From assembly GCA_024704765.1 (NCBI GenBank), contig JAKMXF010000316.1, forward strand, positions 186,001-250,000: 64,000 nucleotides of DNA. Direction: 5' to 3'. Shown here piece after piece: positions 10,100-58,030 of the stretch. The translations under genes were made by a program, and so were the position numbers. Below the pieces are notes generated by a model. That model worked only from the letters and a program-made list of their open reading frames with translations. It was not told the DNA's origin and made no database searches. Origin of the DNA: Oopsacas minuta. Its lineage: Eukaryota; Animalia; Porifera. Every line of letters begins with the position of its first letter. Positions within the stretch are counted from its first letter, which is position 1.

Positions 10100-10960
10100 G
10101 CCGAATTTCAAAATATTGCCACATCTGTCGAGATACCTGAAGCGATCTCAACCAAATTTTGTGTGTCACACAAATGTTGGTCCACCATTTCAAATAAGGA
10201 GTATTTAAGAGAAATTTTTATTTTTACAAACGATGTGTGATTTTTCAACACCTCTTCCATACGAATCAATACAATAAATTTGGATTTTTTTCATTGGCCA
10301 ATTAAATTCTACCTATACGTAATGGTATAGAATTGGTAATGTTACACCAACTGATTGCGTAACTTAGTTCTGCACACCGTTTACTCATCGCCATTGCATA
10401 CATACCATTTCCACTTTTAATATGTATTCAATGGAATTGGAGTCTTTTGAATTCGAATGGCATGTCTACTGGAAGGAGTGGAATTCTTAGGATGAATATA
10501 TCTTCTCCAAATCCCGTCCAGTTAGTCAAGTACATGAGGCAGGATGGATTTGATTGCAAGGCGAGTTGCAATACATAGTTTGGGTAAATCTAAGTCTTAA
10601 CAGTATGATTGTCGCTCCAACTGAATCAGTTGTGTGGTGGCAGTCCTGGTGGTTGTAATGAGTTAAGAAACTCAGTTGATATAGAACTGCAGTATCCGGC
10701 TCAACAACTGTATCAATGGATCTGTATATTATTTAGTACCAGCTAGTTTTTTGAGTAAAATATAATTTGATCGCTTCCACTTTATCATTCCTTGGGACCA
10801 GGATGGCCCTTTACAAACCCACTGGAATTTACAATTTAATTTGGTATTCAATAAGTTCCTAACCCAATCTACTAACATACAATTAATCACCAATTCTGCC
10901 AAATTACGCATAAATAGGATAGTTTGAACACTGAACTCATTAAAAGTCGTTTGTGCAAAT
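10100..10960 (-). pseudogene. Probable degenerate 3' segment of the CFAP46-like gene
   Basis: Manual translation gives NCMLVDWVRNLL, LIQLERQSYC*D, LDGIWRRY, DMPFEFKRLQFH and IGRI*L, in the order of recalled human CFAP46 C-terminal motifs (SCSASETMRDVL, LLQLQHQLRCQD, VSKAWQNL, EMPPTFWILFLH, VMRLAI). Contains stops and frame changes. Confidence 0.5.
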
Positions 10961-11009
10961 CTATGGAATGATTTCTGACATACGCATTCTTAAAGTTATG
11001 CAGCTTTAA

Positions 11010-11210
11010 GTACAGTGAAAATAAGTGTTGGTCCACCACTTCAAATACGAAGTATTTAAGAGATATAAGTATTTTAAGAGAACAATGTAAATTTTCACCA
11101 CCACTTCCACACAATTCATTGGCCAATTAGTTCTTCCCACACATAATCTGCAAATTCTCGATCGGATCTTTGGAAGCCGAAGGCCCCATAAATCTTTCCG
11201 CAAGAACTAG
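11010..11210 (-). repeat. Diverged duplicate of the 10150-10340 segment (CFAP46-like remnant)
   Basis: Direct repeats TGTTGGTCCACCA.TTCAAATA...AGTATTTAAGAGA (about 10174 and 11025) and TTCATTGGCCAATTA (about 10291 and 11116). Both copies encode SLKY..FE.VDQHL. Confidence 0.6.
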
Positions 11211-12239
11211 TAGAATAAGCCGCACGAGGGCGGCGTTTCGGCTAGGACTATTAAAACGCGACTGTTGGATACAGAGAGTTGCACGCAAGGCGGTCTGGCC
11301 CACGGGCAGCCCGCACCTGCGGACCAAGTTTTATTTATCGGGCCACAACAGGCACACACCATACACATAACTCTCTTCTTCCGCCCAAATACGTATCAGG
11401 ATTATAATATATTTTTGTTGCTTATCTTGGTGTCTGCTAAATTTAATTAATTTAGTTCATACATTTAAATTAGTTGGCTAAAATACTTATCTGCTTTGTC
11501 AATACAAACATTTTATAGGATAGGAAAATTTTGAGGTCAATACAGATCGTAATTTTTTGCGGGATGCATCAGGCAGGATTTGTTAAAATTGCGGGCATTG
11601 GATATAAAATTTCGGCCCAAATGTTACTTTGAGTATACATAATATGTATAGAGGTATCCCTCTCTGTTCGCGCGGGTTACGTTCATGAGATTCACCGTGA
11701 ATGGCAATCCGCAAACAGCGAGACTAAATGTCAATTGAAAAAAGGAGGTTAGGTTCCCCAATTCTAGGTCAACACATACAAAAAGTTCATAATTGCCAAA
11801 AAACTTGAAGTGTAAGTCAGGAATGGAAGAAGATCGAGCAATTCCCACTTGGTAAACAAAGTGACAGCAGGTGCTATGCAAGAAATGATCACCTAACAAT
11901 TGTCACCAATGAATGGTAGAAATACATGGTTCTAGTTTAGAACTGTTAAATTATTACCAATATTCATAGAATCACTAAATAATACCCAAATCATTTCGAA
12001 ATTAGAAATACTTAAATAGTAAGGTTCAATTTCAAAGTTTTGGTAATCACTGAGACATATAACCAAAATTATTACTCAAAAACCGCGAATAGTCGAGGGA
12101 ATGTGTCGCGAACGGCTAAATATGCCACAAAATATTATTTGCGAATGGTCGAAAGCGCGAACGTTGAGGGCTGATTGAATTGGGCCTACTACAAATAATC
12201 CGCTCAGCATTAAAAATAATAAGGGCAATCATTAGTACT

Positions 12240-12813
12240 GGGCCTGCCACGAAATTTTTGGTCCGAGGGATCAATTTTTTCATGGAATATGGGTCCGTTG
12301 CTGAAAATCTTAGTCATAGAGCGGACAATTTTCCATGGAGTTTTGGTCCATTGTAGGACCTGTCGCGAAATAGTCGGTCCGGCAGGAGCGAATATTCCAG
12401 ATATATTTGGTCTGGCTGGTCTAAAATATTTTCAACCATTTCAGGTTCTGGGTACTAAATGATATCTTTCTGACAAAATACAGACGTGTTGGGGTTTTCT
12501 AAGCAACCTAGGTTGCTATATAGGAACCCTCAAGCAGAAGACTGCCATCGGTCCCTAAAATACTCGAGCAACCTAGGTTGCTAAGAAATATCCAGCAACT
12601 AGTTTGCTATTTTGAAAATCTTAATCAATAACTAACAGCAAAATATATGCAACAATCCGGGTTAGAAAACGTCCGTATTTTGTCAGAGATATCATTTGGT
12701 ACTCAGAGCTAGAAATGGTTGAATATTTTGGACGACCAAATTCTACACGGTCCGAATACATCTTGACAGATTAACCAGATTTTCAGTTAGGGCCAATTTT
12801 CCAGTGACAGGCC
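12240..12813. mobile_element. Foldback-type MITE with GGCCTG(T/C)CAC termini and nested palindromes
   Basis: Terminal GGGCCTGCCACGAAATTTTTGGTCC vs GGGCCAATTTTCCAGTGACAGGCC. Inner inverted repeat of about 70 bp (12423-12502 vs 12662-12729). Two perfect AGCAACCTAGGTTGCT palindromes. Confidence 0.65.
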
Positions 12814-13064
12814 TACTACAAGTAATCGTCACAGGGAAAATATACATTACCACCTGTGCCGACAGGTAATGTCAATGAGGCACTATATTTTGGGCATTCT
12901 TAAAGCACCTCCATTGATATTTCCTGGCGTAACGGGTTGTAATAATATTTTTGGTGAATATTTTGAAATTTTTGATGTTATCGTCACCTAATTATGCTGA
13001 CGTCATCATATTATGGATCAATGGATAGATATCCATCCAATGAACATTTCATTCATTGTAAGAA

Positions 13065-15239
13065 CAGTGGAACCTCGAGAACTGGGCACAAAAAGTAGCC
13101 CGAACAAGTGCCCCAGTTCGGGAGAGTGCCCCAATTCGCGAGTCTTTAAAATGTCCCACATTTCCAAACGCAACGCATAGGTGGTAGATATAAAGCTCAT
13201 ATTAAGATTTCACAGTTACAGTCAATCACCAGTCAAGTTAATATCATTGTTCAGAATTTTTGAAGAACTCAGTGATGCTCGTCTGACGAAGCTCAGAGGC
13301 CATTCGGTCTGTGATGAGTTGGCTGTACCACTGCAGGTCAATAGTATCACCGATGGCGTTTTTATCTCCACGAAATATGGCGTACATTTGCAGTGTCCTG
13401 ATAGCAGCGAGAGCCTCGGAGTTCCTTGGGGCTTCAGAGGCGGTTTCTTCCACTTCTCCGATATCGCTGAGATACATTTTGTCTCCTCCGGAGTCCACAA
13501 CTGTAGAGTTGTCAAGCACAGCCATGTCGGATAGAGCCTCTGGAGTCTCTTGAGGAGGGAATAAGACCTTGTCATCATCCTCCCGGACCTGCATGTCCAG
13601 TTCCTCCTGTTCTAACTCATCGCAATACCCTAACTTCATCGCAGGAGCGGGATCGGCCACTACACCAACCTTACAAAATCCGCGGTTTGCGAAGCACTTC
13701 GAAATTGTACGTTTCTCGACTTTTTCCAGGCTCGAAAATCCACACCATGACCAACGCGATGTTGATGGCCTTGAGGGGGTCGTCATCAGCGGCCTGCTGG
13801 CTAAATAGGCTGCCGAGTATATGGATGGAGCTGCTCTCTGTACTTCAGTTTTAGAGCTTGAATTATCCCTTCGTCACATGGCTGAATGCACGACTTAGTA
13901 TTCTTGGGGAAGTATACGAGCTTGACTGCCTTTAGTGAAATATCACGCATATTATGTACCCCTGCATTGTCCATGGTGAGCAGCACGTTTCGGCCCTGGG
14001 CGCTCATCCTGCAGTCGAAGTCTCGAAGCCACTCCTTGAATATGCGACCAGTCATCCATGCAAATTTCTATGACCGGTAAATTACAGGCAACTTTCCTAA
14101 ATTGGCGCCTTTGAGAGCTCTCGGGTTCACTGCCTTTCCGATCATCAAAAGCTTTCCCTTCTCCCCCATCCATGAGCAGCAGATGAGCACAGTCAGCCGT
14201 TCTTTCTGAACCTTCTTCCCGTGACCACTGTCCCCAGCCCTGACCAGAGATTTCTTCATGGCTTGTTTGAATCTTAGGACGGTCTCGTTGCAATTAAAAA
14301 CCTCTTTCATCCCATATTCTTTCAATATATCAGGCAATTCCTCCATCCAGTTCTTAACCAGTTACTTGTCCACAGCAGCCGCCTCTCCACTCTAGTTCTT
14401 TCTGACAATCCTGTGTCTCTTCTTCACCTTATCAAGCCAGCCTTCTGAAGCCTTGAAGTTGTTGATGCCACGCTTAGTCGCTTCTCACTTGCCTAACTCC
14501 GTCAACATGGGACCAGTGACTGACATACCCCTCTCCTTCGCCACTCAATGAAGCTCACCACAGCATTTTCGATGTCTTCATACTGCGGGTTGATCTGTAC
14601 GATCTTCCTTTTCTTAACGTGATCTGGTATTTCGTCTTGTCCGTTCCTGAGCTTTTCGATATCCTTCTGCTGCCGCTTCAACTGCTGACGTTCCCTTTGC
14701 TAGTTCCCATGTCTCTGGCTATCGCTCGTTCGGCCAAGCCTTCCTCGGACAGTTTGAGGATCTTTGAACGCTGTTCGAGGTTAAGATGTGGTTTGGATGA
14801 GGAAAACATACAGGAGATATAGAATGACTAATAAAAAAAATACCGAGGAGACGTCGAATGCGTGCATTATTCAATTCATGTTACAAAATGAACATGAACT
14901 ACATCGTATAATGAAGATGAATGTTCATTTCTTGAAACAAACATGCCGCAGTGTTCCTACCTTAGTTCTAGATTTTGGAGAAAGAAATCGAAAGATTGTG
15001 TTGAAAAGTTGAGATGATGATGACACATACACACACATACTTACATACAATCACATACAATCACAGAGAGAGAGAGACAGGGAGCATAAAAAAACAAAAA
15101 ATCTTATCAAAACAAAGCGCCCCACTCCGCGAGGGTAATATGCTAGGAACGGAACCAAAATGTCAAAAATTTTGGGTCAACTACCCCACTTCAAGAGGTG
15201 CCCCACTACGCGGGTGCCCCTGTTCTCGAGGTTCCACTG
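13065..15239 (-). mobile_element. pogo/Tigger transposon (TIGD4/6-like transposase), full length, disrupted
   Basis: TIRs CAGTGGAACCTCGAGAAC. Minus-strand pieces FKASEGWLDKVKKRH, FNCNETVL, KERLTVL, AWMT..IF.EWL, LLTMDNAGVH, QPCDEGIIQALKLKY. AC/AG microsatellite at about 15020-15080. Confidence 0.9.
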
Positions 15240-15693
15240 TACCACTAAAATATCACATATCCGAAAAACACCACTTGTGTGCCAACATATCGACACAATG
15301 TATCGGACTTGTTGACTACGAAAAGCACATTCATGACTAACAAGAAACTTATGTACGAAATTTCAAAATACAATTCAGAAATTGGGATCTTTTGATGCAT
15401 CATCGTCACCCAATGTTGCAAAAGTCATCATTATGTAGGCCAATGGATTAAAGTCAACCAATAGACATTATATAAATTCGAAAATATTTTATAGGTGTAA
15501 AATAATTTGATGTAATTCACATTGTATAACTTACAATGACAATTCTGACCCCACTTCGTCAATCAATTAATGGTCAATCTGGGGTCAATTTTGACCCCAC
15601 TAAGTCTATTTTTATGAAAATATATACTCAGTTCATGCTGTGATATACTTTATATAGAACGATTTTAAATTCACGTGTCACGCTCTAGTAAAT

Positions 15694-18600
15694 TTAGTGG
15701 AAAAGTCTTGTATAGTTAGGTATTAAATCAATAGCTGAAAACTGGATATAACTAATATCGGTTAACAAATTAATATTTATCCCATCTTTTAGGCAAAGAA
15801 GTGTAAGCTGTTGAAAATGTTTATTACTAGAAGCAATGTAAAAAAGAGCTTTGGATTGGGAAATTTCGTGTTCTTTGAATTCTATAATCTCTAACATTGT
15901 CGATCGAGAATATTGATCAGAGTCAGAATTATAGCACACCCACATTTGATCAGTTTCTGTTCCAAAATAGTGGTATAATGCGATCATTGCCCTCGAAAGT
16001 TGAACAATATACTCTAAAGAAGGATTATTTTGTAATGATACTAGAATTGCAATTGATTCAGTAATAATACGAAAACAATTTTGGATTAGCTGTTCACTAA
16101 ACTCTAACGATTTAAAGTTTCGATAAACAAGCATATCGAAAATTCTGTGGGTGGATGTAGAGATGTGGAAGTTCAACTTTTTAGTACATAACTCAGTACA
16201 CTTTTCGAAGACGGTAATCCCGAAAGATGAGAAAGATATCTGGGTATTCGCAAAATCAGAGCATATAGGAGAATAATTATCAAGAAAAACATCAAACTCT
16301 AATGAAACAGAATTCAAATATGAAATAGTGTCGATATATAGTTGATTAAGTCTTTTGTAAGATAATACTGTTTTCATTACATATCTAGAATAAGTTTCCA
16401 GCGGAATGGCTTCGTCAATAATTGTAGCGAGTTTGCATAAATAAAATACGTAATTCTTCAAGGAAGAAATGCAATCAATAAAATTTTGAGAAGAATAATA
16501 CATGCAAAAACAACTATATAAAGTTTCAAGTAGGATCTCAATATCTATTATGTTACGTTTTCTATTCGTTTCGATATGAGAGAAAGCGAAATCAAGCTTA
16601 CGAGTTGCCAATTCAAATTCGAATCTTGTTTTTATGTATGAGTAGTAATTCCAAGATTTATCCGAAATATTTTTATGAAATAATCGTATGTAGTTTTCCA
16701 GATATTCATTAGCTAAAGAATATTCCAAGAAATTTCCAACAGAATTGTAGAAATGAAGAAGTACATTAATTGGAAGAAATTTATCTTGTAACATACGTGT
16801 AATAATAGATTGGCCATTAATTGAGAAATTGAATGCATCGTGGATAGATGCCTTCAATGACTGGATCTTATAATCAAAGAAGAGTTTAGGTGACAATTCT
16901 AAAAAGACTTCACATTCAGCCACAATATCAATCGTGGGCTGCAGTTCTCCTAACTCTAACAATACATTTGAAATTTCTAGTGCCAAATAAATGATGAAAT
17001 CAGATTGATAGAAGGTATAAAAAATATCTAAATTTATATTTTTGCAGGTTGCTGATGCGCTATCAGGTAAAAACGGACCCGGTAATACAATTGCTTGATT
17101 ATGAAAATCTTTAGTAATTTCATGCAGAATACTTCTATCTTCTTTTGCAAAGTATTCTCCATACAATTTTTCCTTCCAAAATTCATATGAAGAATCGAAA
17201 ATGAATTTTTTGGAATATATCATCATACTTATATAGGATAAATGCAACCAACTTCTTGGACAATTTTCATTAGTTGTTGATATGTAATGGATAAGAAGGA
17301 GAGGGATTAACTGATAATGTGAGAATAATGACAATTTTAATTCCTCCTTGAAATAATTGAGATAATACATAGTAATATTTGGATATTTCAAAGAAATTTT
17401 AGGCCTTTGGTTAGTATCAATTAGTTGAGTTCGATTTAGAATATATTGTGACCAATCGGGTAAACTATGTGGTACAGCCATATTAGTATTGAATTTAGTA
17501 GATCCTTTACTCTTTTTCGACAGTTCTTGAGTCGTCATTCTAAGATCTGTATCTCGAACAACAGTTTGGTTCAACATTGAATAAACACAAAAGAGAAGAA
17601 GTCGAAGATTGGAATCATACAAAAGTCCATCTGATCTACCAGAGAGAATTAGGGATATGATAGATAGTCGAAAAAAACAGTCAATTTCGGGGGTAGTCCA
17701 TTCCTCAAAAGATTGATTAAATTTTCCATAGTTTTTGTTTTGATGTATAAATTCGGGAGCAAGAGGCGCATCTTTCTGATATATTCCATCATCATCCCCT
17801 ATATTGTCAATCAATCTCTCAAACACATATTCAATAAGTTGTCCTAATGTATCTTCAAACAAAGTACACAACACTTTGGGAGGATATTTGATCAGCACCA
17901 ACCAGCTCAAAAATTCGAACAAAACTTCAATTCGTAAAAGAAAATCATCAACACCAGAAAGGGATTCAAGTGCAGATTTATAATAAACGAATTTAAACTT
18001 AAATGAAGTTGAAGCATGAGCAGCCATCAACCACAAGTCAGATTGATCAATCTGATCAAAATCTGCAATAATTCGTAAGATATCCATGTGTACGTCTATT
18101 TTCATATTTGATTTGAAAATGATCAAATATTTAAATAAATTTTGATGGGATTCTCTAGGGATTTGTGTCAATGCCAATTCCACAAATTTGAGACCAATAT
18201 TCCACATCTTCTGGCGAGAGAATGCATCCAAGCAAAGCATAAAAAATTCTATCCTAATGTCTTTACCTTTATCAAATCTAAAAAGTGAAATTTCTACTTT
18301 CTTATATTTAGACAAATATGATAAAATGGTTGTTGCATTTTTGGTAAGGAAATATGTAAACTCAGGTGTGTTTAAAACTAGCCTACAATAATTTAATATC
18401 ATTTGTAAACAGTATAAAAATAAATTTACACTGTTACTCTCATTTCCATAAGAAAACGCTTTGAGCATTTGTTCGAATATTTCGCTCGATCTTGCAAAAG
18501 GTTTCACACAAGACAAACTTATTGCTGAAATAGACTCCAATTGTGACAAACAAAAACATATTTTCTGGTGGACAATCATAGTTTGTGACTCGCTCAAAAG

Positions 18601-19641
18601 CAAAATTCCAATATTTCGCCCATACTCAACACAGGAAGATACCATACTATAATGCTCTACATTAAGGTAGAGTCCCGCCAATTCTATTATTAGTTCCAGA
18701 TTGATTATACTGTTGGGACTTTTTGAACACGTCAGGCAGTCAAACGCAGAACTAAGTGCAATTTCTGGAACTAGGAGATTAGAATTTTTAGAGGATAGTA
18801 CTTCAATCATCACAGTAGCCTTAATTATATGCAAATCATCAGAATCTTTGAAAAGTTCGATTAAGAATTCATAGCGAATTTTCTGACCAAGTTGAATTAA
18901 GACTTTGACCCAAATAGAGACTAACTGTTTGAAATTTGTGAGATTTAAGTCAATGTTCATTAGCAATGAAAGTGAAAATTCACATATTTCCTTGGCTTCC
19001 TTTAATAATTCTTCACTAACTACTTCCAATTGTGTTCCAAACCCTGAGGATGAGATTGGAGTATCGACATTCTTTTTATCTTTGTCATTCTTGAGAGAAC
19101 CTTTCAAGGTTGTGCCTGGGATCACGGGTGGAACAGATTTAGTATGTTGTGACGATTGGTATAAGCAATTGATACATGCATATGATAATTTGTAGATGAG
19201 TAAGTGTGGTGAAACATTATGTTTTGAGGTAATGTGAGAATATATGTCACGTAGGGGTTGGAGGAGAACAATTTCGTTTTTCAGTGTATATAAATGTCTT
19301 GTGTAGTTCCAAAAGCATACCAGACTGTTCGAAATTAGCCAACTTTGGTTTAAATCTAATGCCCATTGTCCAGCAAAAATAAATCTCTCAACAGCTGTAA
19401 CACTCAGTGTATTCATCAAAGAGGCAAATTTCAACCATCTCTGGTCATCTTTATACAAATCATTAAGATGAAAACTCGTTAAATCAGGTGAAACATGGAG
19501 TTGTAAATCTTCCTTTAGTATAAATTGAACAATTCCTTCAGCTAAAATGTACTGAGCTTCGGCAAATATTTGGAGAATTCCTTGATCACGAAATTTCAGA
19601 CTTGAGTTTTTCTTGGAGCTGCGTCCACTCGCGATGCTGGC
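15694..19641 (-). CDS. CFAP46: Large intact exon of CFAP46/TTC40-like gene (1,316 codons including the TAA)
   Basis: Acceptor CTTTAG| at 19642/19641, phase 0. Open frame to TAA at 15694. Matches to recalled human CFAP46 include IFAEAQYILAEG, WLISNSLVCFWNYTRHL, EICEFSLSL, KQLVSIWVK, WNIGLKFVELALTQIPRESH, PHSLPDWSQY and ALFYIASSNKHFQQLTLLCLKDG. Confidence 0.85.
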   Translation of the reverse strand, partial: ASIASGRSSKKNSSLKFRDQGILQIFAEAQYILAEGIVQFILKEDLQLHVSPDLTSFHLNDLYKDDQRWLKFASLMNTLSVTAVERFIFAGQWALDLNQSWLISNSLVCFWNYTRHLYTLKNEIVLLQPLRDIYSHITSKHNVSPHLLIYKLSYACINCLYQSSQHTKSVPPVIPGTTLKGSLKNDKDKKNVDTPISSSGFGTQLEVVSEELLKEAKEICEFSLSLLMNIDLNLTNFKQLVSIWVKVLIQLGQKIRYEFLIELFKDSDDLHIIKATVMIEVLSSKNSNLLVPEIALSSAFDCLTCSKSPNSIINLELIIELAGLYLNVEHYSMVSSCVEYGRNIGILLLSESQTMIVHQKICFCLSQLESISAISLSCVKPFARSSEIFEQMLKAFSYGNESNSVNLFLYCLQMILNYCRLVLNTPEFTYFLTKNATTILSYLSKYKKVEISLFRFDKGKDIRIEFFMLCLDAFSRQKMWNIGLKFVELALTQIPRESHQNLFKYLIIFKSNMKIDVHMDILRIIADFDQIDQSDLWLMAAHASTSFKFKFVYYKSALESLSGVDDFLLRIEVLFEFLSWLVLIKYPPKVLCTLFEDTLGQLIEYVFERLIDNIGDDDGIYQKDAPLAPEFIHQNKNYGKFNQSFEEWTTPEIDCFFRLSIISLILSGRSDGLLYDSNLRLLLFCVYSMLNQTVVRDTDLRMTTQELSKKSKGSTKFNTNMAVPHSLPDWSQYILNRTQLIDTNQRPKISLKYPNITMYYLNYFKEELKLSLFSHYQLIPLLLIHYISTTNENCPRSWLHLSYISMMIYSKKFIFDSSYEFWKEKLYGEYFAKEDRSILHEITKDFHNQAIVLPGPFLPDSASATCKNINLDIFYTFYQSDFIIYLALEISNVLLELGELQPTIDIVAECEVFLELSPKLFFDYKIQSLKASIHDAFNFSINGQSIITRMLQDKFLPINVLLHFYNSVGNFLEYSLANEYLENYIRLFHKNISDKSWNYYSYIKTRFEFELATRKLDFAFSHIETNRKRNIIDIEILLETLYSCFCMYYSSQNFIDCISSLKNYVFYLCKLATIIDEAIPLETYSRYVMKTVLSYKRLNQLYIDTISYLNSVSLEFDVFLDNYSPICSDFANTQISFSSFGITVFEKCTELCTKKLNFHISTSTHRIFDMLVYRNFKSLEFSEQLIQNCFRIITESIAILVSLQNNPSLEYIVQLSRAMIALYHYFGTETDQMWVCYNSDSDQYSRSTMLEIIEFKEHEISQSKALFYIASSNKHFQQLTLLCLKDGININLLTDISYIQFSAIDLIPNYTRLFH

Positions 19642-19922
19642 CTAAAGAAAGCTTCAATAAAGCCACGATAATGAATAAAACACAACACGTGACGTATATA
19701 TCTAAACATTGGCAAGAGAAAAGGCAAGGGGTTATGTCTGGCATATTTATACCATTGACAATCTTTGGATAGTAATTTCACAATTACTTCAGGATTTTAC
19801 TCAGATAGAAAATAAGTTATAAAAACCGGGGTAAGATAATTTCAACTGTAACCTATCAACTAAGCAATATTTTTCCAAAATTATCCGTAGAGTGCAAAAT
19901 AATGCACCTTTTGATCTCAGGA

Positions 19923-20500
19923 TCTATATTATTAAATCACAATTGTTGTCTATCTGTTTGTCTGTTTATCTGTTTGTCTGTCTATCTGTTTGTTTGCCCG
20001 TTGTCAGGGAAAGGATTTACTGTATGCAATTTTGAAATTGTCGCATAACTTTGTAGTTATCGTGTATATCAAGGAAGTAAATTGAATTCCATAAATCATG
20101 ACTAAATATACTGATTTTCATACTTTTGGATTAATCATATTTACTTTGTTGTTGCTTATATTAATATAATGCCAACATATTATCCAAATCTCAAAATATA
20201 CATACAGGTTATTTCTAAACTGTTGTCTAGGAGTAAGTCAATATGCTGAATACGAATTTCGAATTTCAAGTTTCTCATATATAAATATATTGTTGTTTTT
20301 ATGAATATAAAGTAAACAAATTTCAAAATTGAGGTAGAATCATACTTTCAACGACTATACTGGAATAGTCGAGTATGCTGAATCATAATATCATAAACAA
20401 CATCAATATTTGTAAATCTCAATTTTTGTTACATGTTTTTTGTCCGTTGAATACCTCGAGGTGCAACGCGCCGAGTTCATCGTGGGATCGACGAGCCATT
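19923..20500 (+). mobile_element. Non-autonomous Helitron-like repeat
   Basis: A|TCTATATTATTAAA start followed by a (CTGT/CTGTT)n microsatellite. Contains unit CAAATTTCAAAATTGAGGTAGAATCATACTTTCAACGACTAT shared with 44200-44400 (partial copy at about 9680). No clear 3' CTAG. Confidence 0.45.
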
Positions 20501-28368: not shown

Positions 28369-28689
28369 CTTGCTCGTGACGACAGGATATTCTGCAGAGT
28401 TTATCAATTCCTTTTCAGAGGATGGTGCTACATTGCTAAATTTAGCGAAATTACCCCAACGTCCATCATTGTAGAATAGACAAAATCTACTAGAGATCCT
28501 GCAAATATCCCATATTCCCATCTGTCTTGCTATCTTTGATAATTCAAACAATAACTGGCAACGTAATTTATCCATACTAGTTGGAAGAGTGTGAACTTGG
28601 ATACGCTTAGAAGATTCAATAAACATATCTACAGATCTTTCAAGAAAATCCAATATCAAGAATGGGTCATCTGTCCGGAGATCTGTGTG
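28369..28689 (-). CDS. CFAP46: CFAP46-like internal exon (107 codons)
   Basis: Acceptor CTCTCTTTGTAG| at 28690/28689 and donor AAG|GTACCA at 28369/28368, both phase 0. ELSKIARQMGIWDICRISSRFCLFY matches recalled [25 protein letters not shown]. Confidence 0.88.
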
Positions 28690-38988: not shown

Positions 38989-39643
38989 TATGGAGGAGAT
39001 AGTGGCAGAAAATCAAACTCCATGGGATAGGAATTATGAAAAATACGTCGTCGATGTCTTGAGACGTGGAAAAACGGAGAATCTCATCCAAGAGAATGTT
39101 ATAATATATTGAATGTTTATTCCTTAGTATCTATTGGATCTGTTGCTAAGGTTACTAAGCGGAATGGAAAATACATGGCAACAAAGGAGGAAGTTATTAA
39201 TGTGATATTTTCTATGCATATCGCAACAGGCCATGGAAGTGAAAAGAAAACTCACAAAAAGATACAAGATAAATTTGCTAATATCTCGCGTTACCTTGTC
39301 CAGGAATTTATAAAACGTTGCGAAAGATGTGCAGAGAAGAGAGCAAACGAGAGACTGCTTCGGGCGTAGTTATACGTCCTCTAACAGTGAAAGACTTAAG
39401 TGAACGTGGCCAGGTGGATCTTGTTAATATGCAAACTATCCAAGATGGTAATTTCAGATTTATATTACATTACATGGAATATCTAACAAAATTCCATGTT
39501 ATTCGTCCTCTACAAAGAAAAACAGCTACAGAAGTTGCAAATCAATTGCTTCTGATTTTCCTAGACTTTGGAGCACCAAATATCTTACAATCAGATAATG
39601 GTCGTGAATTTACGGGACAAGTGATTCAAGAACTTTCAACTCT
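38989..39643 (+). pseudogene. GIN/Ginger2-type (KRBA2/SCAND3-like) integrase, frameshifted, truncated by an assembly gap
   Basis: H..TGHG...C..C zinc motif, RGQVDL, YLTKF..IRPL..KTA.EVA..LL.IF..FGAP.ILQSDNGREF. Confidence 0.88.
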
Positions 39644-39672
39644 NNNNNNNNNNNNNNNNNNNNNNNNNNNNN
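39644..39672. other. Assembly gap (29 N)
   Basis: Run of N. Different elements are truncated on each side. Confidence 0.99.
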
Positions 39673-44813: not shown

Positions 44814-44829
44814 CTGTCCGATCGTAGCG

Positions 44830-46330: not shown

Positions 46331-46529
46331 GATTAAAATGACGAGACATAGCAAGTAATCAATATTATATCTGATCCAAGGTTACATTGTAACATGGATT
46401 TAAGGAAGAAGGTACGACCAAGATAATTCTAAAAATACATCAATTTAAATAATATTTAGGTCATTTCAAACTACGGATCACCCCCCCCATCACATTGACA
46501 ATAAGGTATAACTGACATGTAATAAAATC

Positions 46530-46825: not shown

Positions 46826-49320
46826 CAGTGTTTCTCAAACTGGAGGTAGCGGAACATTATAAGAGGTTGGCGAGATACAATTCATCTCTGAAAGAACACC
46901 CGGAAGTTTACTAAATAATATTACCAAGTTCTTTTTAAAGTATATTCTTTACTCCTTTTAGTTAAAAGTGTAAATAAATATAGGATTCTCTAATATTAAT
47001 AGATACGCTTTGAGTTGTTCTTTTCACCTCGGTTGTAATTTCTCGGCTTCTTGATCAAAATATACATCATATATATTACTTCTTGAAAAATATGTACATC
47101 GTACTTGTATGAATAGTTTCACAGTATCATGAAAAATTAAATTCCATTCAATCTAAAATCTAAATAGTCAAAAGTGATCGCCATACAACCCAAAAAAGCG
47201 AAAATATATGGACAGTTATATTGAATTATGGGTTTAATATGGTTGACATGCAATTAGGAGAAATCAATAAAACCGAGTAAATCCAAACGACACTTGGAAA
47301 TTCATCCTGAGTATTTAGAAAAAGATCCTTCATTATTATATAAAAAGGAAAATAATTACAATTGTCAAGACTGGAAACAATAGGTGCATATTGCAAACAA
47401 TCATTTGCTTATATTAAGCTTCATATGCTGTTTCGCTACGAAATTCGCTACCAATGGATATGATCCGATATGTTTTTAGGACATAAGAATGCTAGCAAGT
47501 GATCATCAATTCTCTTATCTAACGACACAATTGATAGGCGTACTTCTGAGATATCCAATAATATTTGTTGCCAGTTGTTAACAGTTAGAGTCAAGCAGTT
47601 ATAAAATGTTCTCCTCATAGGTTGATGACTCAACTGATGTTTCTTTATGCTCAGAAAATTAGGTACGTTCGTTATGTATCTGGGAAAATTTATGGCTATG
47701 TCGCGAACTTCAAGATATGTCGATTGATTGATAAATATTTCAAGAGAATGGAATTGAGTGTAAGAATGTGTGGAATTTGTAGCGAGGGTACAGTAGTAAT
47801 ACTTGGCTCACGTTCTGAATTTCAAAATTAAAGGAAAGAACACCACAAGTCACAGGTATACATTGCATGATCCATAGTAAGCACTTTGGTTGTAAAACAA
47901 TGCAACCACAGTTTTTGACAGTGATAACATCAGTCATTAAGAGTCAATTTTACCAAACCGAGTGCGTCTAACACTCGCATTTTCAGGTAACATTGTGAAA
48001 AACTGACTGCTAGCCATCAGAATCCACTTTTCCACGTACAAGTACATTAACTTCATTAAAAGAGTTGTAGAGTTGCCTTCCAAGATAAAATATTCCCTGA
48101 TGAAGATAGCAAACATGAATTTTGGCACAAATCAATCATCCAAAAAGTCTTGGGCGTATTAGTGTACCTCGAGGATATATTTGAACGCATCAATACATTG
48201 AATCTCTCACTTCAGGGGAAGGAAAAGTACACAAATATTTGAGTGAAATACTCAAAAGTTTCCGAATGAAAATTCACTATTGGTAAAGACAAATTAACTA
48301 AGGAAATATACTTATGTTTGAAAAATGGCCGAATATTCGAAAATATAGATACAGTGGAAACAGCTTAATCGGGACAGCTCGGGAGTCAATGTTTTGTCCC
48401 GTTAACCGATTGTCCCGATAAACCGAATATGATATATCTAAGTATTCAAAACTAGTTTTTATAGTCTCAGATCATAACCAGAAATATCGTATTACACTAC
48501 TACAAAATCCTAATTTATATAGGGAGTGGAGCAAATATAATATAATCTTGGTTTGTAAATTGTAAACGAATCGGCGTTGTATTGTCATGGGTGTAGAATA
48601 TTAAAATTCCTACTTTTAACAACAAACCATATTACAATGATTCTGTATAAATGTACAATAGTTTAATTAGGATAAAATCCAATTAAACGAGCATAATTTT
48701 CATATTCGGTAAATCGGGACAAGAATTCCCAATTAATTTATTATGAACCATGAAATAATCGGTCAATCAGGATAAAAAATCAACTAACAGATTCGATATC
48801 TCAATTATTCCACGAATTTCTATGTAAGAAATCTGTTCCCAAAGATTTATCCCATTTAAGCGGATATCTCGATTATCCAAGTCCCGATTTTCGGCTTCCA
48901 TTATACTGAATTGGATAATGATATGAAGACTATAATCTCGGAACACACTGGAAGAATAATTTTCGCATTATTATCCTGAGCGGGAGTATTCAGCAGATTT
49001 GAAATCATTAAAATCCTTTTACTACATCTCTCGAAGCAATTGCAGGTAAATATGATTGGTCACAGGATGGATTGATACATCTCAATAGTGATGTATTCTT
49101 TTGGTACTCAATGGAGGATACCTATCCTATTCTAAACAAAAGTATCCTTAAATTATGTGGCCTTTCTCCGGGACCTACCTTTTAGAATCAGGTTTTTCAA
49201 TTCTGTTACAAATTATAACCAGCATTAGAAACAAATTAAAGGTCGAATATGATCATCGCTGTGCACTGGCAAGCAAGAAGCCGGAAATTCAGGATATTGT
49301 TGAATAAAAGTAACTACATT
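46826..49320 (+). mobile_element. hAT Buster/SPIN-like (ZBED5-like) element, degenerate, right TIR missing
   Basis: Left end CAGTGTTTCTCAAAC. Motifs LSNDTIDRR, VDDSTDVS, YLEDIFERINTLNLSLQGK, ESGFS..RNKLKVEYDHRCAL. Confidence 0.8.
48352..48903. mobile_element. pogo-type MITE nested in the hAT element
   Basis: CAGTGGAAACAGCTTAATCGGGAC and GTCCCGATTTTCGGCTTCCA ends. Same family as 21156-22995. Confidence 0.7.
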
Positions 49321-49339
49321 ATATTAACATTTCATCTAT

Positions 49340-49860
49340 GATGACAACCTCATACAGCCGGCATACACAACATTTTTTCGAACTGTTCATTACAACATTC
49401 TAGCATCTGAATGCGTATCGGGACTCACCGATCGCAAACTCTTCTAAATCTGAGAACATTGATTAGAATACGATAAATGTTTCCCGTTTAGACCCCAGTA
49501 TATCTGGAAATCTCTTCAATCGAGCAAAAAGGATCATATCGAAGAAACTCGTCCACAAACGCAATTGAATTACCACACATAGAAAGATGTAGGTCGACCA
49601 GTCCGAGGCTCATTTCTGTCTGTCTCCACCCTCACTAAATAGCTGAGCCCATTTTCATACTGTGGAGTAAGCAAAACTTGGTCACCATATACTTGTAAAA
49701 GTTCATAAAAGATGTTGTTGCTAGAGTATTCCAGAACCTTACGAAATTGATGTATGCTCTTTGCTATTGTTCGATTATTGAATATTTTGAAGCAATTATT
49801 TAGACAAAACAAACCAAATGTAACTAAAATATTTCTAAAAATCATTGGCTATATTTCTGT
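49340..49860 (-). mobile_element. mariner N-terminal fragment
   Basis: NRTIAKSIHQF, ELLQVYGDQ, NEPRTGRP and R.VCDR*VP remnants. Confidence 0.65.
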
Positions 49861-50546
49861 GAATAAGAGATGTACCATACTATTTGATTTGAATGAATGG
49901 AAAAATTTCATTGATAATAAATGACACTATCTATAGTGATCAGTAATGATGTTATGATCCAAATAGTATTACTGCAGATTCAGCGACTAGTTATGACAAA
50001 ATTGTGGTAAAAAAGAAGTGTCAAATGATTTAAGAAATGTATAATGGCGTGGTCCCAATAGTTGTATCGAGGTACACAGCTTGCACTTTTGGCTAAGGTA
50101 AAGTTTGAGCCTATGTAGATAATGATAAATATCCAAAGGAAGTCAAAAGGCGCCGGTCATATGACATCAATACCGGGTAAAATCCATGCATATGTGACTG
50201 GCATACAGAGGGCGAAATTTCTCATCTATTATATTCTAGCAATAGCACTTCTTGCCCTGACGCATATAAAAAGAATCAGAAAGTTTGTAAGGCGTATGAA
50301 GTATGCACCTAAGAACATGGATGAAACAATGGATACATGATTCAGGAATCAGAGGTAGTCTAAATACTTCAATTTACACAAAACATCGCAACAATGCTAT
50401 TAGTATTGCCAAAAGAAAGCAAACGCCTAAACTAACAAGAGTACTAGAGATCTATGATAGAAACGAACTAGTAATCTAATAGCAACCAATAAATACCATA
50501 AATCACCTAGGCGGGCTGTAGTAAAATGGATCTAATGAGAACTCAC

Positions 50547-50912
50547 ATTATACTCTTGTGTATCAATAAAAGGAGATATTGAATGTCCAATAAGAAGTTC
50601 AGCAATATTAATAAGAGTTTCACGTAATTTAATCCCCTGCATAACCTTTGAAATATTGCTGAGTAACTGAACGGCCCGAATGAGCGGATCATTAGCAAAC
50701 GAAAAGCGGTGCATCTTAAGTTTGAGAAGTGATATTTCATAATTAAGTTTCATAATCCAATGCTCATCATTGATGTACTTGAGCGACTGTTCCAAGTGAT
50801 TCAAAGCGACTTCAAACTCTTGGCATTGTTGCTCACAAAGAGCAAGTTCTCGAAAATAATATGCTCTCAAGGAATGATGTTGAGAGCCGATTTCGCCAAG
50901 TATGGAAGATAT
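50547..50912 (-). CDS. CFAP46: CFAP46-like internal exon (122 codons)
   Basis: Acceptor TTTTGTAG| at 50913/50912 and donor AAT|GTGAGT at 50547/50546, both phase 0. LRAYYFRELALCEQQCQEFEVALNHLEQSL matches recalled [30 protein letters not shown]. Confidence 0.85.
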
Positions 50913-51284
50913 CTACAAAATATTTGGAGTAACAGAAAATGTATAAAAAATAGTAACATAGCACAATTCAAAATATTTCTCTAAATTCAATAGGGTTTGC
51001 TATCGCCTGTCAGGTCGATGGCAATAAGAGACACAGATTGGGTATTTACATCGACTGGAAACATCGATATTCACTCATTCTAAAAAATATCACCCTACTA
51101 GATATTTCGAGAAATGATATTTGAATATAAATTCATTTTAATCACGCAGTTGTTAAATTCGCACTTGATTATTTTATATGGAGTATTGCATACACTAAAT
51201 ACCTGTGTTAACAAATTTATGGAAAATTTGTAATGGTATAATGAATTACTCAAATGAATTATTCGAATTAAAACCTAAATATTA

Positions 51285-53925
51285 CAAGGTATCCCAAAAT
51301 AATTGCCCTATTGCGTATAGCACAAAATATATTATAACTGAACCTTAAAACAGTATAGACATTAGTTATGGTGATTGAAGAATTGAAATATAACTGCTAT
51401 TCAACTCGAAATATTATAGCTGCTATTTTATAAGTATTTAAAAAATTTTGTCCTCTTTGCCCTGACTGGATTTACTGCCCAATATGGATGTCAATGAAAA
51501 TAAACTACAGGTTAGAAATCGTGCTATCGGTATGCTACCCGCAGGTTCTACTCAGAACTATGTAGCAAACAAACTTAGAAAGGATATCCGAAAGGTTCGG
51601 AGATGGTTGGCACGGTATAATTCTTCAAAAGACCTCCAACACATAGAAAGGGGGATGAAAGGCCCAAAAAGCTAAAAAGGCGGTCCAAAATCATTATTGC
51701 AAAATCTCTTGGTAAACAACACAAGCCAACGCGATGTATTGCCAAACAAATTATGAGAACGTGTGCTCCTGTCTCAAAAGACACCATTCATCGCTATTTA
51801 GCAAAATATTTGGGAGTTAGGCCCTATAAGCGACCCAAACATCCAAAACTCTCTGCAAAACAGAGAGAAAACAGATTAAATTTCTGTCTGGCAAAGCAAA
51901 ACTGGACTGTTGCTGACTGGAGAAACATCCTTTGGTCTGACAAATCTTCTTTCGAGCTATTTCACCCAACAAATCACCAAAATGATAGGATGGGCCAAGA
52001 ATAGCTCGAATATCATGCACAGGAAACGGTGAAATTTCCCCCGAAATTCATGGTTTGGGGAATGATGAGCTTTCGAGCTATATCAAAATTACACTTCATC
52101 CCTCCCAAACAGAAAGTGAATACAGCCTACTATATAGATGAGATCCTGGCTAAGTCTTGTTTGGATACCCTTCGCAGAACTAAAAATAATGGATCAGTTT
52201 GGGAGATGAAAATGGTACCAAACATGTCAAAGGTTGTTTTTAGGCAGGACGGTGTCCCAGCTCACACGCCCAAAATGACCCAAGGTTGGTGCAAGGAGAA
52301 CCTACCAAACTATTGGGAGAAAACTCAATGGCCGGGGAACTCTCCTGACTTAAATCCAATTGAAAACCTATGGGGATATCTTCAGGAAGAACTGAACAAG
52401 AAGGAGCCGCAAAAACTATTTCGGACCTAAAAATGCAGCTCGAACCTGCCTGGGAAGCTCTACAACCAAGTTTTCTGCAAGCGTTAGTAGATGGAAGCCG
52501 GAAAGAGTTAAAACTTCCATCGAATTGGATGGTAAATATACAGGGTGTCTAATAAGCTCTGTCCTCAATGTTTTGCCTGCCATATTTTCTATATTAAACC
52601 AATTTGGTCGATATTTTACAAACTGATAAAATATTTAGTAATAAATTGTTTAGTAAAGTGTTTACTCAATATATCCTCCCTTTTGAGAAATTACAGCCTG
52701 TAGCCACGTCCTAAAGTTCCCTACTGCATTTCGCAGCTCATCTTGTGGTATTTTCTGCCATTCATGCTGAAGGGATAGCTTCAGAGAATCCAAACTCTTG
52801 GGAAGTTTAGCAAAGGCCCTTGCCTCCAGATTAGCCCAGACGTTATAATCGAGCGGATTGAAACTGGACTAGATGGGGGCAATTCGGCTTTGCGAATAAA
52901 CTCGATTTTTCTTGCCCTTAAACAGTCTTGAGTGTTTTTGGATGCATGTGCAGCGGCAGAATCCTGTTGAAAGATCTAAGTGTTAATTCTAAAGAGATTT
53001 TGCCCCCAGTTACACTGATTTCCTGTTCCAAATCAATTCTTGTTATGTCGCAGAGTTGATTTTGACCCCTTGGGGGACAAAAATCAGATTTGTCCGACAC
53101 ACCACGCCAGACCATCACAGACATTGGCTTCTGCACTTTATCGATGTATTATAAGTTTTCTGGGATAGCTGTGGAACTGGTAACAAGAATCCGATCATTT
53201 TGTCTGCTCTAAGCCTCTTCAATCGTGAAAGTTTTCTCATCTGAGAAGAGGATCCGGTCTTCGGCCCCAGGAGCGAACCGCTGAAGAAGTGCTTTCGATC
53301 TAGCCAGCCTCTTAGTCCGAATGCTCGGGTTAAGGTGGTATACCTTCTTTCTTTTAAGATACTTTAGCCCTAGATCCTCAACTAGCAGCTTTCACATCGT
53401 TTCATGACTAACCGATAACTCACGGGCCATTTTCCTGATGGATCTCCGGGGATTCCGAGAAAATTCGGCAGCGGACTTTGTTCTTCAAGGCCGGAGTCCT
53501 TACAGACCTTTGGACGACCGGATCTAGGTTTGTCACTCAAGCTTCCAGTATCCTTATATCGTTTTATGGTACGATATATTAGCTTAGGTGAAACCTTTCC
53601 ATTTTTTGGCATTTGAAATTTCCTTTTTTGAGCTACCTATCTCGAAAAGTGCGATAATTTGGATCTAATTTTTCTGAGCCATTATTTCACAAGCGTAAAT
53701 AATATTATGTAGAAGCCTATTATATCGTTAGAAAGAGTCGAAAAGTGTCACAAATTATGCATCTAAAACTCCTTGTGTGTTCATACGTAACTATGCAATG
53801 AGATGTGATTTATGAGGACAGAACTTATTAGACACTCTGTATATCCAAATGAATGCTAATATTTTCCTCTTTTCTACTATTTTATAGCTAGAACTATAAT
53901 AGGGCAATAATTTTGAGACACCCTG
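51285..53925 (+). mobile_element. Tc1-like DD37E (TRT-like) transposon carrying a nested maT
   Basis: TIRs CA(A/G)GGT(A/G)TC(C/T)CAAAAT(A/T)ATTGCCCTATT, TA TSD. WSD, QDG and PIE motifs with 37 residues between D and E. The C-terminus rejoins when the insert is removed. Confidence 0.88.
52541..53838 (-). mobile_element. maT (DD37D) transposon nested in the TRT-like element
   Basis: TIRs CAG(G/A)GTGTCTAATAAG(C/T)TCTGTCCTCA, TA TSD. Motifs FSDEK, QQDSA and SSP(D)FNPLDY; spacing is 37 after restoring a 1-bp deletion. Confidence 0.88.
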
Positions 53926-54720
53926 TACATTACAAATGTTTGTATACTACAAGGAAGAAATCCAAATGGAAGTTTGCTAGATCGCATGTTTTTCTTCTCA
54001 CCATGGCTATCAAAATGTTCAGATTTCTAATCCTATTTATGCTATATCTGCATGACACTTCTGGAAATCTTTGAATATATAATTTCAGACATCAAGAGTT
54101 AATGGTAGGTATGAATTATTCAACTAATTAATGAATTCATTAACTCATAGATTTGTTAACTTAGCTTGATAATCACTACAAATACTTTTGATATACTTAC
54201 AATAACGCAAATATTAATACTCATGAAATTGTAGAACATAAATCTTGTGGGATCGATCATTTTGTTACAGCCCAGCACAGATGGAAATAGGTGGGAGTGG
54301 AGATATTTTACATGTGTATAAAATGTCTAGATTTCTGTTTACCAGTTTTCAGAATACCATATTTCATATAAACTGAGTTTTAGTGATAATAGTTCTTCAA
54401 CTCAATGAGTTATGGAATATACCTCGAAATGTTAATTTTCTTAAATGTATTGTTGTGGTCTCTTAGTCAATAAAATTTACTTCACTATACCCACCTCCTC
54501 CTATACACAAAAGCGATAGCACTCAATTCAATTCGGACCATGGATGCGAATTACCTGGACTTCAAAGCTAAAAATAATTATTACACAGCCTTTCAATGCT
54601 GCCAATTAAATATTTACCGTATACTAGTATATACCTTGTTCATGTGGCTAACCCAACCTACCTTATGAATATCTAACACATGATAAAGCATTTAAATTCT
54701 CCCTATGAAGAATGTGATTA

Positions 54721-54955
54721 CAGTAAAACTGGGTAATTTTGGTCCAATTGGTTTACTTTAGCACAAATATTGAAGTTCTCAAGAAATTTCGATATGATTC
54801 ACTGTTAACCTGTAAAATGTCCAGGCATATTTTGATCAACTTTTAAACCATATAGGTCATTTCGAAATGAAATTACGGATGATATGATATTTTAAGAAAT
54901 TTAAATCTTTGGGTTAAAGTGAACCCTATGAGAAAAATAACCCCATTTACGACTG
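54721..54955. mobile_element. Degenerate pogo-type MITE
   Basis: CAGTAAAACTGGGTAATTT and AAATAACCCCATTTACGACTG imperfect inverted ends. Confidence 0.4.
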
Positions 54956-56701
54956 ATAAACTTTCTTAAAGCGAGAATGTATTTTTTTGAAATGCAAAAC
55001 AATTAAAAGTTGAGAACAAAATTGGACTATAATCCAGACCGAAGCGTGTCCTATAGTTATAATATGTTGATTTTAGAAGTATACTTCACGAGTTTTCTAA
55101 CTATAAATGCAGACATAATTTTTCAGGCAAGATTGAAGAATAAAAAATCGAGTATCTTTTGAAACTATTTGTAACGATTCACTAATTGAAAATCTTTAAA
55201 TTTTGATGACAAAGTTGCATTTTGTGACAATTAATCAAACAATTAGACCAATATTCTATATGGGTATCTTCTAAGGATAGAAATGTATGAATATGATTTT
55301 CGCAGTTGTTCCTAACCACAAATTTTGCCTGAAAATGCGAAACTTGACAATCAAAATGATGTACTTTTAGTCTCTCATTTGGCAGAAAACTTGGCATAAA
55401 TATCATTCAGATATATATGAGCAATGGGAAAAAGGAATTATCTTTATGAAACGAGGAATTTTCACCCAAATCCTTACCCCAAACTACTGTAGACTGTCAA
55501 GCAGATTCCACTGCACTGTGAGTAGATGAGTGAGAAGAATACACGATCTCAAACACGGAAACATGAAAGAATAATTTATCCTATCGTGACCTAAGTTATA
55601 ATGAGTCCTGTTCACTGGAGTGACAATTTGGACGTCTATGAAGACCATTGGTTTATACTACAAATAATAATGAAATAGATGGCATTCAACCAAGATAACA
55701 ATTAAGAACTTGTTCTTGTGCGATTTTAAGGACCATAGATGTCGTTGAATTAAATTGATTATAAGACAATACAATGTTATATATAGATATAAGATCACAT
55801 AAGTTACACAGTACAAGAAGTAAAGGCATATTTATTGGTTGAATACAAGAATACACTAAGTCACACATTAGATAAATATGAGTTGGGTTTAGAGACAAAA
55901 CAAATAAGAAGCCATTTGGGTTTCAACTACTTCAATTTTTGAGTGTTTTCCACATAAGTCTTCAAGAGTAACAACTAGCAAGTAATTCATACACTGGCGT
56001 CGGAAAAAGGGGGGCTGGGGGCTCTGGCCGGTTGACTTTTTGGGATATATTTCATGTTTCCTGTACTATCAAAATAGTGTATTATTATATGTCACAGCTA
56101 TATCCAAACGTTTTCAGACTGACACTGTTGTATGTAGCATCTCAATCTTTTAAATTGATTAAGTAGTTTCCAGTTTGTTCAGGCCTGTGTTGATTGAAGT
56201 GGGAAATGAATTTGTTGGAGGCGCAAATTCTCGTCAATCTCTGAGTGGAAAATTTGTAATGAATGATAATAACTATCAGATGATACAATTATGTATTATC
56301 GTAACAACTTTTCATTATTTATTACAACATTATATATTAGAATCTGAAGGCTCTTCATTTTCTATTGAAATATCTTCTGTGAGAAATGAGAGACAAGATT
56401 GTCATCTGCTAGAATGTTTGTAATAGACATAAACTGCAATGAAGGTGAGTGACTGGGCGAATTGAGTACTTAATTCATTTGCAGAATAATCTTTAATGGC
56501 AAAATGACATTATAAAACCTGATAGAAAATGGAGAGTCTTGGTCGCAAGTTGATGAGCATAATTCTAAAAAGATCCTGAGTGAAATATTATTTTCTAAAG
56601 GATTTTCTGAAAGAATTCAAGGATTCTGGGCTATTTAACCTATGTTCTGTTCAAGTATCTGGCAGTGGCTAATCTTGAACAAAGAGACTACATGCTTTTA
56701 C

Positions 56702-58030
56702 ATCTTGAATCACTGCTTTGTAGGAAATGATTAAATAACAGATGAGTTAGCACAGGAAGTAAACGAACAATAATTGATCATTTCTTCGACAAACTGGATA
56801 CCATGAATGCGAAACTGTTGAGTAGGATCAGAAAGTTTGTAAACTCAGAATCGGAAATAATAATTGAATACAAGCGGTTAAGAGTAGAAAGATATGGTAA
56901 AAATACGCAATCCAAGGATTGCAGATATTTATCTGAAATATGCGATATAAGCCGGGCTTTTCGCGAGAGTACAAGAATTTCAAGGTTGTTTCGAAATATA
57001 TTTTTCGCTTTCATAATGTCCTCCAACTGAGATAGTATGAACTTAAGACAATAAAATACAGGCTGGCAAACGGAGTCTTCTCAGCAATTGAAATGCCTCA
57101 ACAGAAATATCATCAATAGTAGCTGGAGAATGGTGAAAAATTTGTAGTAATAGATATACTCCATGAATATCATATATCTGAGACAGGGTTAAATAAAGTT
57201 GTACACCTTCATAGTAACCAATAGTATGTAGTGATTCGATAGCTATAAAAGGTATTAACGAAAACGAAATCAATGCACTAAGTGTTTGAAAATGCATGAA
57301 CAATTTCAGGGAAATATCATCAGAAGGCGAAATTATCCAATGATCACCGAAATGTATGCATCTTGTTTTAGGCACTAAAATTTCTAAATGGTACTTTAAT
57401 AGACTCTGATCTATAGCAGTATCAATTAATTCTTGTTCTTTCAAGGCTCGATCAAATCGCCGTTCTTTGATAAAAAAAGATAAACGAAATGTACAGGGGG
57501 CAGGAATCTTGAAAACGCTTCTCTAGCTAATTTGCTGAGCACTTCTAAATATGATCGATTTGATTGAAGGACAGGATAACTTATAATGTCATATTGCGAG
57601 GATATGTTTAGAACAAACAAATACAGATTTCAGGCCTCCGATATCTTTCGTCAGAGCGCACGTAGCCATTGATTTACAAGTTCAGGTGGACCAGTTAGTT
57701 CCTTAAATACATGAGTATAAGGTTTCCCTGATAATTACTCCGGCAGTCCGGGGTAGAACAATTGTTAAAAATTACAAGCTAATGGAAAGTATAACAAATA
57801 AATATACATAAGAAAGTGATAAATAAGAGGTAAATTAGAAAAATGTGTATAAGTAAGATAAAAAATGATGAGACAGGATATATCTAAAAGAATGGCACAA
57901 TAATCACGAAACTCTCGATAGGGTGATATTGGCAATATGTATGTCAATTTCCTCAGCATCCCAATTCCAGCAGACACCAGAAATACCCAAAAATTCAGGA
58001 TATGGCTATCTATCTTCATCAAAATTGATA
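56702..58030 (-). pseudogene. CFAP46: Degenerate 5' coding region of the CFAP46-like gene
   Basis: Colinear matches to recalled human N-terminus: YILPISPYREF, VNQWLRAL, FVLNISSQYDIISYPVL, FFIKERRFDRAL and LPVLTHLLFNHF. In-frame TGA at 57651-57653, 57630-57632 and 56778-56780, plus frame changes near 57480, 57062 and 56720. Candidate donor GAT|GTAAAA at 56702/56701. Confidence 0.7.

Follow-up and report, generated by a model that had tools for sequence, protein, structure and literature searches.

A CFAP46 gene of the glass sponge Oopsacas minuta severed by an apparent inversion with a break in its giant exon

CFAP46 and its known variants

CFAP46 (FAP46) serves as the scaffold of C1d, a projection of the central pair in cilia. 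The C1d complex comprises CFAP46, CFAP54, CFAP74 and CFAP221, and CFAP46 belongs to a set of four C1d genes in which loss leads to primary ciliary dyskinesia. Here we describe the CFAP46 locus of the glass sponge Oopsacas minuta, the last three exons of which lie in a 64,000-nt stretch of the genome assembly (positions 186001-250000 of the scaffold C316, hereafter the window). Our analysis suggests that an inversion has cut the giant last exon of this gene, that the part upstream of the cut (the head) has been retained and that the detached part (the tail) has decayed, which we consider the best explanation overall although it is favoured with some reserve.

In humans a truncating CFAP46 allele, p.Glu2429...fsTer9 (residue 2429 of 2715), is pathogenic and causes primary ciliary dyskinesia (PMC11651342). 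In addition, some birds have lost CFAP46 together with WDR93, which provides a precedent for loss of the gene (PMC10445033). O. minuta possesses flagellated chambers and multiciliated larval cells, and the animal comes from an isolated cave population (PMC10280926).

The sponge locus resembles the known CFAP46 genes in that it carries the TPR_CFAP46_N domain, follows the CFAP46 profile in colinear order from position 46 to 1535, retains a tail that matches positions 2130-2440, is single-copy and is accompanied in the genome by an open CFAP74 gene. It differs from them in that its last fifth, which corresponds roughly to residues 2100-2641 of the solved chain, has been severed, inverted and frameshifted, in that its identity to non-sponge CFAP46 proteins is only about 23-25%, and in its span of 137 kb despite a mean intron of 341 bp in this genome (PMC10280926). 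As in the human allele, the C-terminal part is lost while the remaining frame is intact; the human allele, however, is rare, linked to disease and yields little and non-working protein, whereas the sponge truncation is larger, is the sole copy in the assembly and leaves a remainder that looks maintained (PMC11651342). With the birds it shares a lineage-specific disruption of CFAP46 with motile cilia being kept, but these birds have no exon remnants, whereas four-fifths of the sponge gene are intact and the inversion can still be read at the base level (PMC10445033). The closest relatives found, the proteins P0002-P0005, are presumably from glass sponges; P0002 and P0003, at least, are encoded on metagenome contigs (loci L006 and L007). 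The four are 28-41% identical to the O. minuta CFAP46 and have the giant exon too, with its acceptor in the same position, but in these relatives it runs unbroken for about 480 codons further, to a conserved ...YGLGYL... end.

A seven-exon head with open frames

The three exons in the window are all on the minus strand and in phase 0. Exon 5 (window 50547-50912, C316:236912-236547) consists of 366 nt or 122 codons and matches positions 422-488 of a profile built from 23 full-length CFAP46 proteins returned by a library search (E 1e-4). Exon 6 (window 28369-28689, C316:214689-214369; 321 nt, 107 codons) matches positions 578-628 with E 1.4e-11 and was also recovered by a whole-genome profile search. 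Exon 7, the giant and now terminal exon (window 15694-19641, C316:205641-201694), comprises 3,948 nt with the stop, i.e. 1,315 codons followed by a TAA at 15694-15696, and matches positions 637-1535 with E 6e-61. No internal stop occurs in any of them, and their borders are regular: the acceptor and donor of exon 5 read ...tttgtag|ATA and AAT|gtgagt, those of exon 6 ...tttgtag|CAC and AAG|gtacca, and the acceptor of the giant exon ...tttag|GCC. The exons are colinear and ordered along the profile, and the giant exon also matches the solved CFAP46 chain 9ijj_A (E 7.5e-14, residues 648-1235). A preliminary description of the window had already joined these three exons in phase without an internal stop and named the gene CFAP46; both statements are borne out by the borders, the profile and the solved chain. 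Searches were run singly with one exon per query. A Pfam scan of the three exons returned nothing useful, a PDB search with exon 5, the supposed 5' region of the preliminary description and one piece of the tail gave no CFAP46 match, and a word-index protein search with the giant exon found only the exon itself.

Upstream exons were located by a whole-genome profile search followed by a six-frame scan over 184 kb of C316. Four open segments were found on the minus strand of the same scaffold, 17 to 89 kb past the end of the window: exon 1 (C316:339050-338749; profile positions 46-121), exon 2 (C316:307041 to about 306705; 123-212), exon 3 (C316:about 294571 to 294413; 296-334) and exon 4 (C316:266895-266629; 334-423). 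Exon 1 has an ATG directly after a stop codon and scores 30.6 bits for the Pfam family TPR_CFAP46_N (PF25439) against a cut-off of 27. Exon 3 gives a weak match with E of about 1 that keeps the A-x-D-C-L-x-E-L pattern of the family. Phase-compatible GT-AG sites are present at all junctions of the seven-exon chain and no splice site is damaged, the putative junction between exons 2 and 3 being picked by phase alone. Altogether, the head comprises seven in-phase exons, which add up to about 1,900 codons and are spread along about 137 kb of the minus strand. The preliminary description had regarded the 5' end as pseudogenised and had considered an internal start, either at ATG 50753 or at MNTLSV in the giant exon; with four open in-phase exons upstream, including the ATG and TPR_CFAP46_N, the 5' end is not broken and no internal start is needed.

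Every part of CFAP46, head exons as well as tail, is present once in the assembly that was searched (61.46 Mb, 365 scaffolds), and all long multi-domain matches from the library search align in CFAP46 register. By sequence, the locus is the single CFAP46 (FAP46) orthologue of this glass sponge. Of the partner genes whose state had been raised in the preliminary description, CFAP74 is open: Ig_CFAP74_1st scores 124 bits at C318:223447-223737 (plus strand) inside an open frame of 1,304 codons. Judging from such frames, giant exons may be common in axonemal genes of O. minuta. A search for the CFAP54_N family gave no match in the assembly, nor in 14 bacterial and archaeal control genomes, where the family is not expected, so that this negative carries no information.

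Reciprocal junctions and a frameshifted tail

The giant exon is 38-41% identical to P0002 and P0003 and 29-30% identical to P0004 and P0005. In P0002 and P0003 it is a single uninterrupted open reading frame that extends about 480 codons beyond the stop of the O. minuta head. The corresponding last ~485 codons of the O. minuta gene are not in the window, where tblastn with the tails of the relatives gave noise only; their sole copy lies at C316:7054-8510 on the plus strand, 194.6 kb from the head. Colinearity on one strand therefore fails, as profile positions 46-1535 are on the minus strand and positions 2130-2440 on the plus strand. Residues 2086-2594 of the solved CFAP46, which is 2,641 residues long, align with the P0002 tail, from which it follows that the severed part is about the last fifth of the protein (about residues 2100-2641). 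In P0012, the only full-length CFAP46 that was scanned, the C-terminal ~500 residues score as Peptidase_C50 (separase)-like in Pfam, a match that Pfam could not detect in the sponge sequences.

The proximal breakpoint lies inside the ancestral giant exon at window 15723-15724 (minus strand) and is placed to about 2 nt, with homology to the relatives ending at about 15724. Where the relatives read ...S(T/A)IGVFDSKIT, the head ends with ...ISYIQFSAIDL and continues into IPNYTRLFH and a stop, while the missing FERKIT... starts at C316:7075 on the plus strand. The tail begins with FERKITVQYLAL, and P0003 reads LSYIQLSTIGVFDSKITAHYLAL across the break, so that no codon is missing. The last nine codons of the giant exon (IPNYTRLFH) are satellite DNA and not CFAP46. 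They belong to a satellite, here called U, with a unit length of 176-178 bp. Its right half (window 15645-15723, minus strand) is joined to the giant exon and is 80% identical to an intact unit at C316:6897-6978, and its left half, 47 nt at C316:7028-7074, abuts the detached tail; compared with the intact copy at C316:6853-6981, the two halves meet at one and the same point. An array of the U satellite occupies C316:4906-6016. Where they are joined, exon and satellite have no more than about 3 nt in common, and neither junction contains a run of N.

When the segment from about C316:7075 to 201723 is inverted back on paper, the tail directly follows the head on the same strand. Reciprocal junctions of this kind point to a single inversion with two breaks, about 194.6 kb long, by which no coding sequence was lost. 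In the ancestor, the last CFAP46 exon would have been one giant exon reaching to the stop codon. The inversion would then have cut this exon between two codons and, at its other end, one 176-178-bp satellite unit, after which the head would have run nine codons into satellite DNA before meeting a stop, and the detached ~485 codons would have come to lie on the opposite strand near the scaffold start, where they would have acquired five frameshifts since. Recombination between inverted repeat copies was considered as a cause and rejected, as exon and satellite have no homology at the break and the two pieces of the satellite make up a single unit rather than a pair of crossover partners. The idea of an intron at this place was likewise rejected, since splice signals are missing from both junctions: the head has no GT donor there and the tail no AG. 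As an assembler would find no shared sequence for such paired joins, the inversion is taken as real in the sequenced material.

U units were also seen at C316:6850-7074, and they occur in both orientations near the scaffold start. A different repeat, with a tandem unit of about 41 bp that forms long arrays on scaffold C338, occupies about 15400-15640 of the window, downstream of the head junction.

In the tail, frame changes were placed by frameshift-aware alignment to P0002 and P0003 separately. Both alignments agree on five frameshifts, near C316:7330-7342, 7602-7608, 7720, 8025 and 8300. Between these there is no in-frame stop, and the motifs RDFSLQ and YGLGYL are conserved. With five frameshifts and the separation from the head, an intact C-terminal region of CFAP46 is not present. 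Of the two suggestions in the preliminary description that concern the ends of the gene, that both are broken and that terminal exons lie outside the window, the first holds for the 3' end only, which is outside the window, inverted and frameshifted; the second holds for both ends, the 5' exons being open.

Around the tail, a single-copy host gene that could serve as a measure of local consensus quality was sought, and only transposon open reading frames were found. The upstream exons of the window were not found within 10 kb upstream of the giant exons of the relatives, and no synteny was detected between the flanks of the relatives and C316. A hAT/DUF4371 transposase-like open reading frame is located about 2.5 kb past the end of the tail in O. 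minuta (C316:11045-13320, minus strand) as well as in the contig of a relative (L006:17559-17822, plus strand). Given flanks with no detected similarity, their position beside both tails is probably a coincidence.

Is the truncated gene maintained?

The structure of the exons, the identity of the gene, its presence as a single copy, the reciprocity of the two junctions and the frameshifts in the assembled sequence are established, and it can be asked whether the head is still a gene. The preliminary description had held that the density of lesions is too uneven for uniform decay, and this is upheld with the lesions now counted in the true tail: the 1,457 nt of the tail contain five frameshifts and the head exons, which total 5,697 nt, contain none, giving P = 3.5e-4 if lesions fall evenly. 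The test gives P = 1.4e-3 against the giant exon alone, and if one frameshift is set aside as the first, killing event, so that four are left to place, P is about 2e-3. This unevenness suggests that the truncated gene is probably still under selection. Whether it is still in use is a closely related claim, and we regard this as probable, at a level between nearly even and somewhat better. We infer that selection maintains the truncated head, which would be expressed as a C1d scaffold with a shortened C-terminus. The context is in favour of this, with CFAP74 open in the same genome, an assembly polished with Illumina reads and an animal that has flagellated chambers and ciliated larvae.

Rates of protein change were compared by aligning the translation of the giant exon and the pieces of the tail, in one row with an X for each frame change, with the four relatives. 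In the five-taxon tree the branch of the O. minuta head has a length of 0.60, compared with 0.61 for P0002 and 0.89 for P0003, and is thus not accelerated. In the three-taxon tree of O. minuta, P0002 and P0003 the O. minuta share is 0.33 for the tail versus 0.28 for the head, a difference that is not significant (bootstrap P = 0.11). As the tail is barely more diverged than the head, the break would be young when set against divergences as deep as these.

Several points weigh against a retained head. A young break weakens the case for its long-term retention. The five frameshifts are those of the assembled sequence, from which the expression of the head is only predicted, and the tail lies 7-8.5 kb from the scaffold end in repeat-rich surroundings, where consensus quality is possibly lower. 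At only 41% identity even the closest relatives are too distant for a ratio of nonsynonymous to synonymous substitution rates (dN/dS). In addition, the match of exon 3 is weak and the junction before it was chosen by phase only. Finally, a working sponge CFAP46 that lacks its C-terminal region would be unexpected given the human allele.

The same recency would be expected if the whole gene were a young pseudogene, in which the inversion or the first tail frameshift had killed CFAP46, the head had stayed open by recency or luck and the dead allele had been fixed by drift in an isolated cave population. We consider this unlikely, though it has to be taken seriously: loss of the C-terminus is pathogenic in humans (PMC11651342), the gene has been lost in some birds (PMC10445033), the population is isolated, and the surroundings of the gene are a transposon graveyard in which its introns have reached as much as about 100 times the genome mean. 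A single decay rate would, however, place the next four to five frameshifts all in the tail with a probability of only about 2e-3 to 3.5e-4. Such a rate predicts about 20 frameshifts for the head, where none is seen, and splice sites are undamaged across seven exons in an animal that still uses motile flagella and cilia.

It is less likely still that the giant exon is whole in the living genome and that the inversion, the five frameshifts or both were produced by hybrid assembly, scaffolding or gap filling. The published assembly (365 scaffolds, about 61 Mb, 36% G+C) was indeed built by hybrid SPAdes from Illumina and corrected PacBio reads, with SSPACE scaffolding, Pilon polishing and GapFiller (PMC10280926). 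Furthermore, the tail lies 7 kb from the scaffold start among satellites and transposons, and at least one frame change resembles a single-base loss in a short run of T when its DNA context is compared with the residues of the relatives. Against an artefact stand the two junctions themselves: they mirror each other at a single point of the satellite unit and a single codon boundary, exon and satellite have at most 3 nt in common there, which leaves an assembler no repeat to cross over on, and both are free of N runs; moreover, the consensus is Illumina-polished, and the head exon of 3.9 kb, which is part of the same scaffold, is without an indel.

The flanks, the introns and the meaning of the truncation

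The retained, inversion-cut head also accounts for the window better than the version given in the preliminary description, which placed decayed CFAP46 ends or dead duplicates beside the exons, with an internal ATG start. Stops and frame changes do exist in these flanking stretches, yet searches of 10100-15693 and 50913-58030 with the profile, the C-terminal tails of the relatives and the true N-terminal exons revealed nothing similar to CFAP46. The putative 3' region is a frameshifted remnant of a pogo/Tigger-type transposase (13247-14880, minus strand) with a Pfam DDE_1 match of 74.7 bits and a second DDE_1 piece and a helix-turn-helix (HTH) in other frames. The roughly 1-kb 5' region had been read as decayed CFAP46; the stretch upstream of exon 5 instead holds two elements that are not CFAP46. 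One is a transposase remnant at 52665-53636 (minus strand) in the intron upstream of exon 5, frameshifted over three frames, one piece of which gives weak matches to HTH_32 and HTH_29 below the Pfam cut-offs; it looks Tc1/mariner-like, a label taken from reading the translation and not from a domain match. The other, at 56781-57522 (minus strand), accounts for the 5' region of the preliminary description and is a fragment of a multicopy gene or repeat family with at least 33 genomic copies, no Pfam domain and no match to the CFAP46 profile or the true N-terminal exons. With transposon and repeat debris in place of the supposed dead duplicates, one copy of each CFAP46 part in the assembly and open upstream exons with an ATG outside the window, this version has become very improbable.

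Exons can be joined from opposite strands by trans-splicing, as in mod(mdg4) of Drosophila. That the O. minuta gene is split yet complete in this way, its tail being separately transcribed, trans-spliced or made as a second subunit, is hardly credible, as five frameshifts disrupt the tail frame and the junctions lack splice signals, with neither a GT on the side of the head nor an AG on that of the tail.

The multicopy piece at 56781-57522 is open over 159 codons, and some copies of its family lie in open frames of 600-950 codons (up to 952 amino acids); the family may be a large one, so far uncharacterised, that is carried by repeats or has arisen by gene expansion. The only run of N in the window is an assembly gap at 39644-39672, within the 21.9-kb intron between exons 5 and 6. 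A plus-strand rve integrase frame (39318-39641) runs into it from the left, and its continuation was absent in all three plus frames on the right, where the sequence is unrelated; the gap may thus conceal most of a retroelement. A CFAP46 exon is not expected within it, since the exons on either side meet along the profile (about 542 to 546), and the reading frame is unaffected by the gap.

The introns of CFAP46 measure about 8.7 to 32 kb and contain, where read, remnants of pogo and Tc1/mariner elements and of an rve retroelement. Over the roughly 204 of 390 kb of C316 that were read, the scaffold looks like a transposon graveyard; the G+C content of the window ranges from about 31 to 46% in 2-kb steps. 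Introns filled with transposons have stretched the head to its present length, giving a gene swollen to 137 kb within one of the most compact animal genomes. The locus also illustrates that "decayed ends" seen by eye beside good exons can be transposon remnants of long introns, and it offers a clean textbook case of an exon-breaking inversion that is readable base by base.

As C-terminal loss is pathogenic in humans, a working protein would be unexpected, which gives the truncation in the sponge some interest. If the head is maintained, O. minuta would build working 9+2 flagella with a CFAP46 lacking its C-terminal fifth, and either the C1d projection would be remodelled or this domain would be dispensable in sponges, a suggestion that we put forward tentatively and rate at somewhat below an even chance. 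A natural and apparently fixed truncation in an animal that pumps by flagella would then show which part of the CFAP46 scaffold is dispensable.

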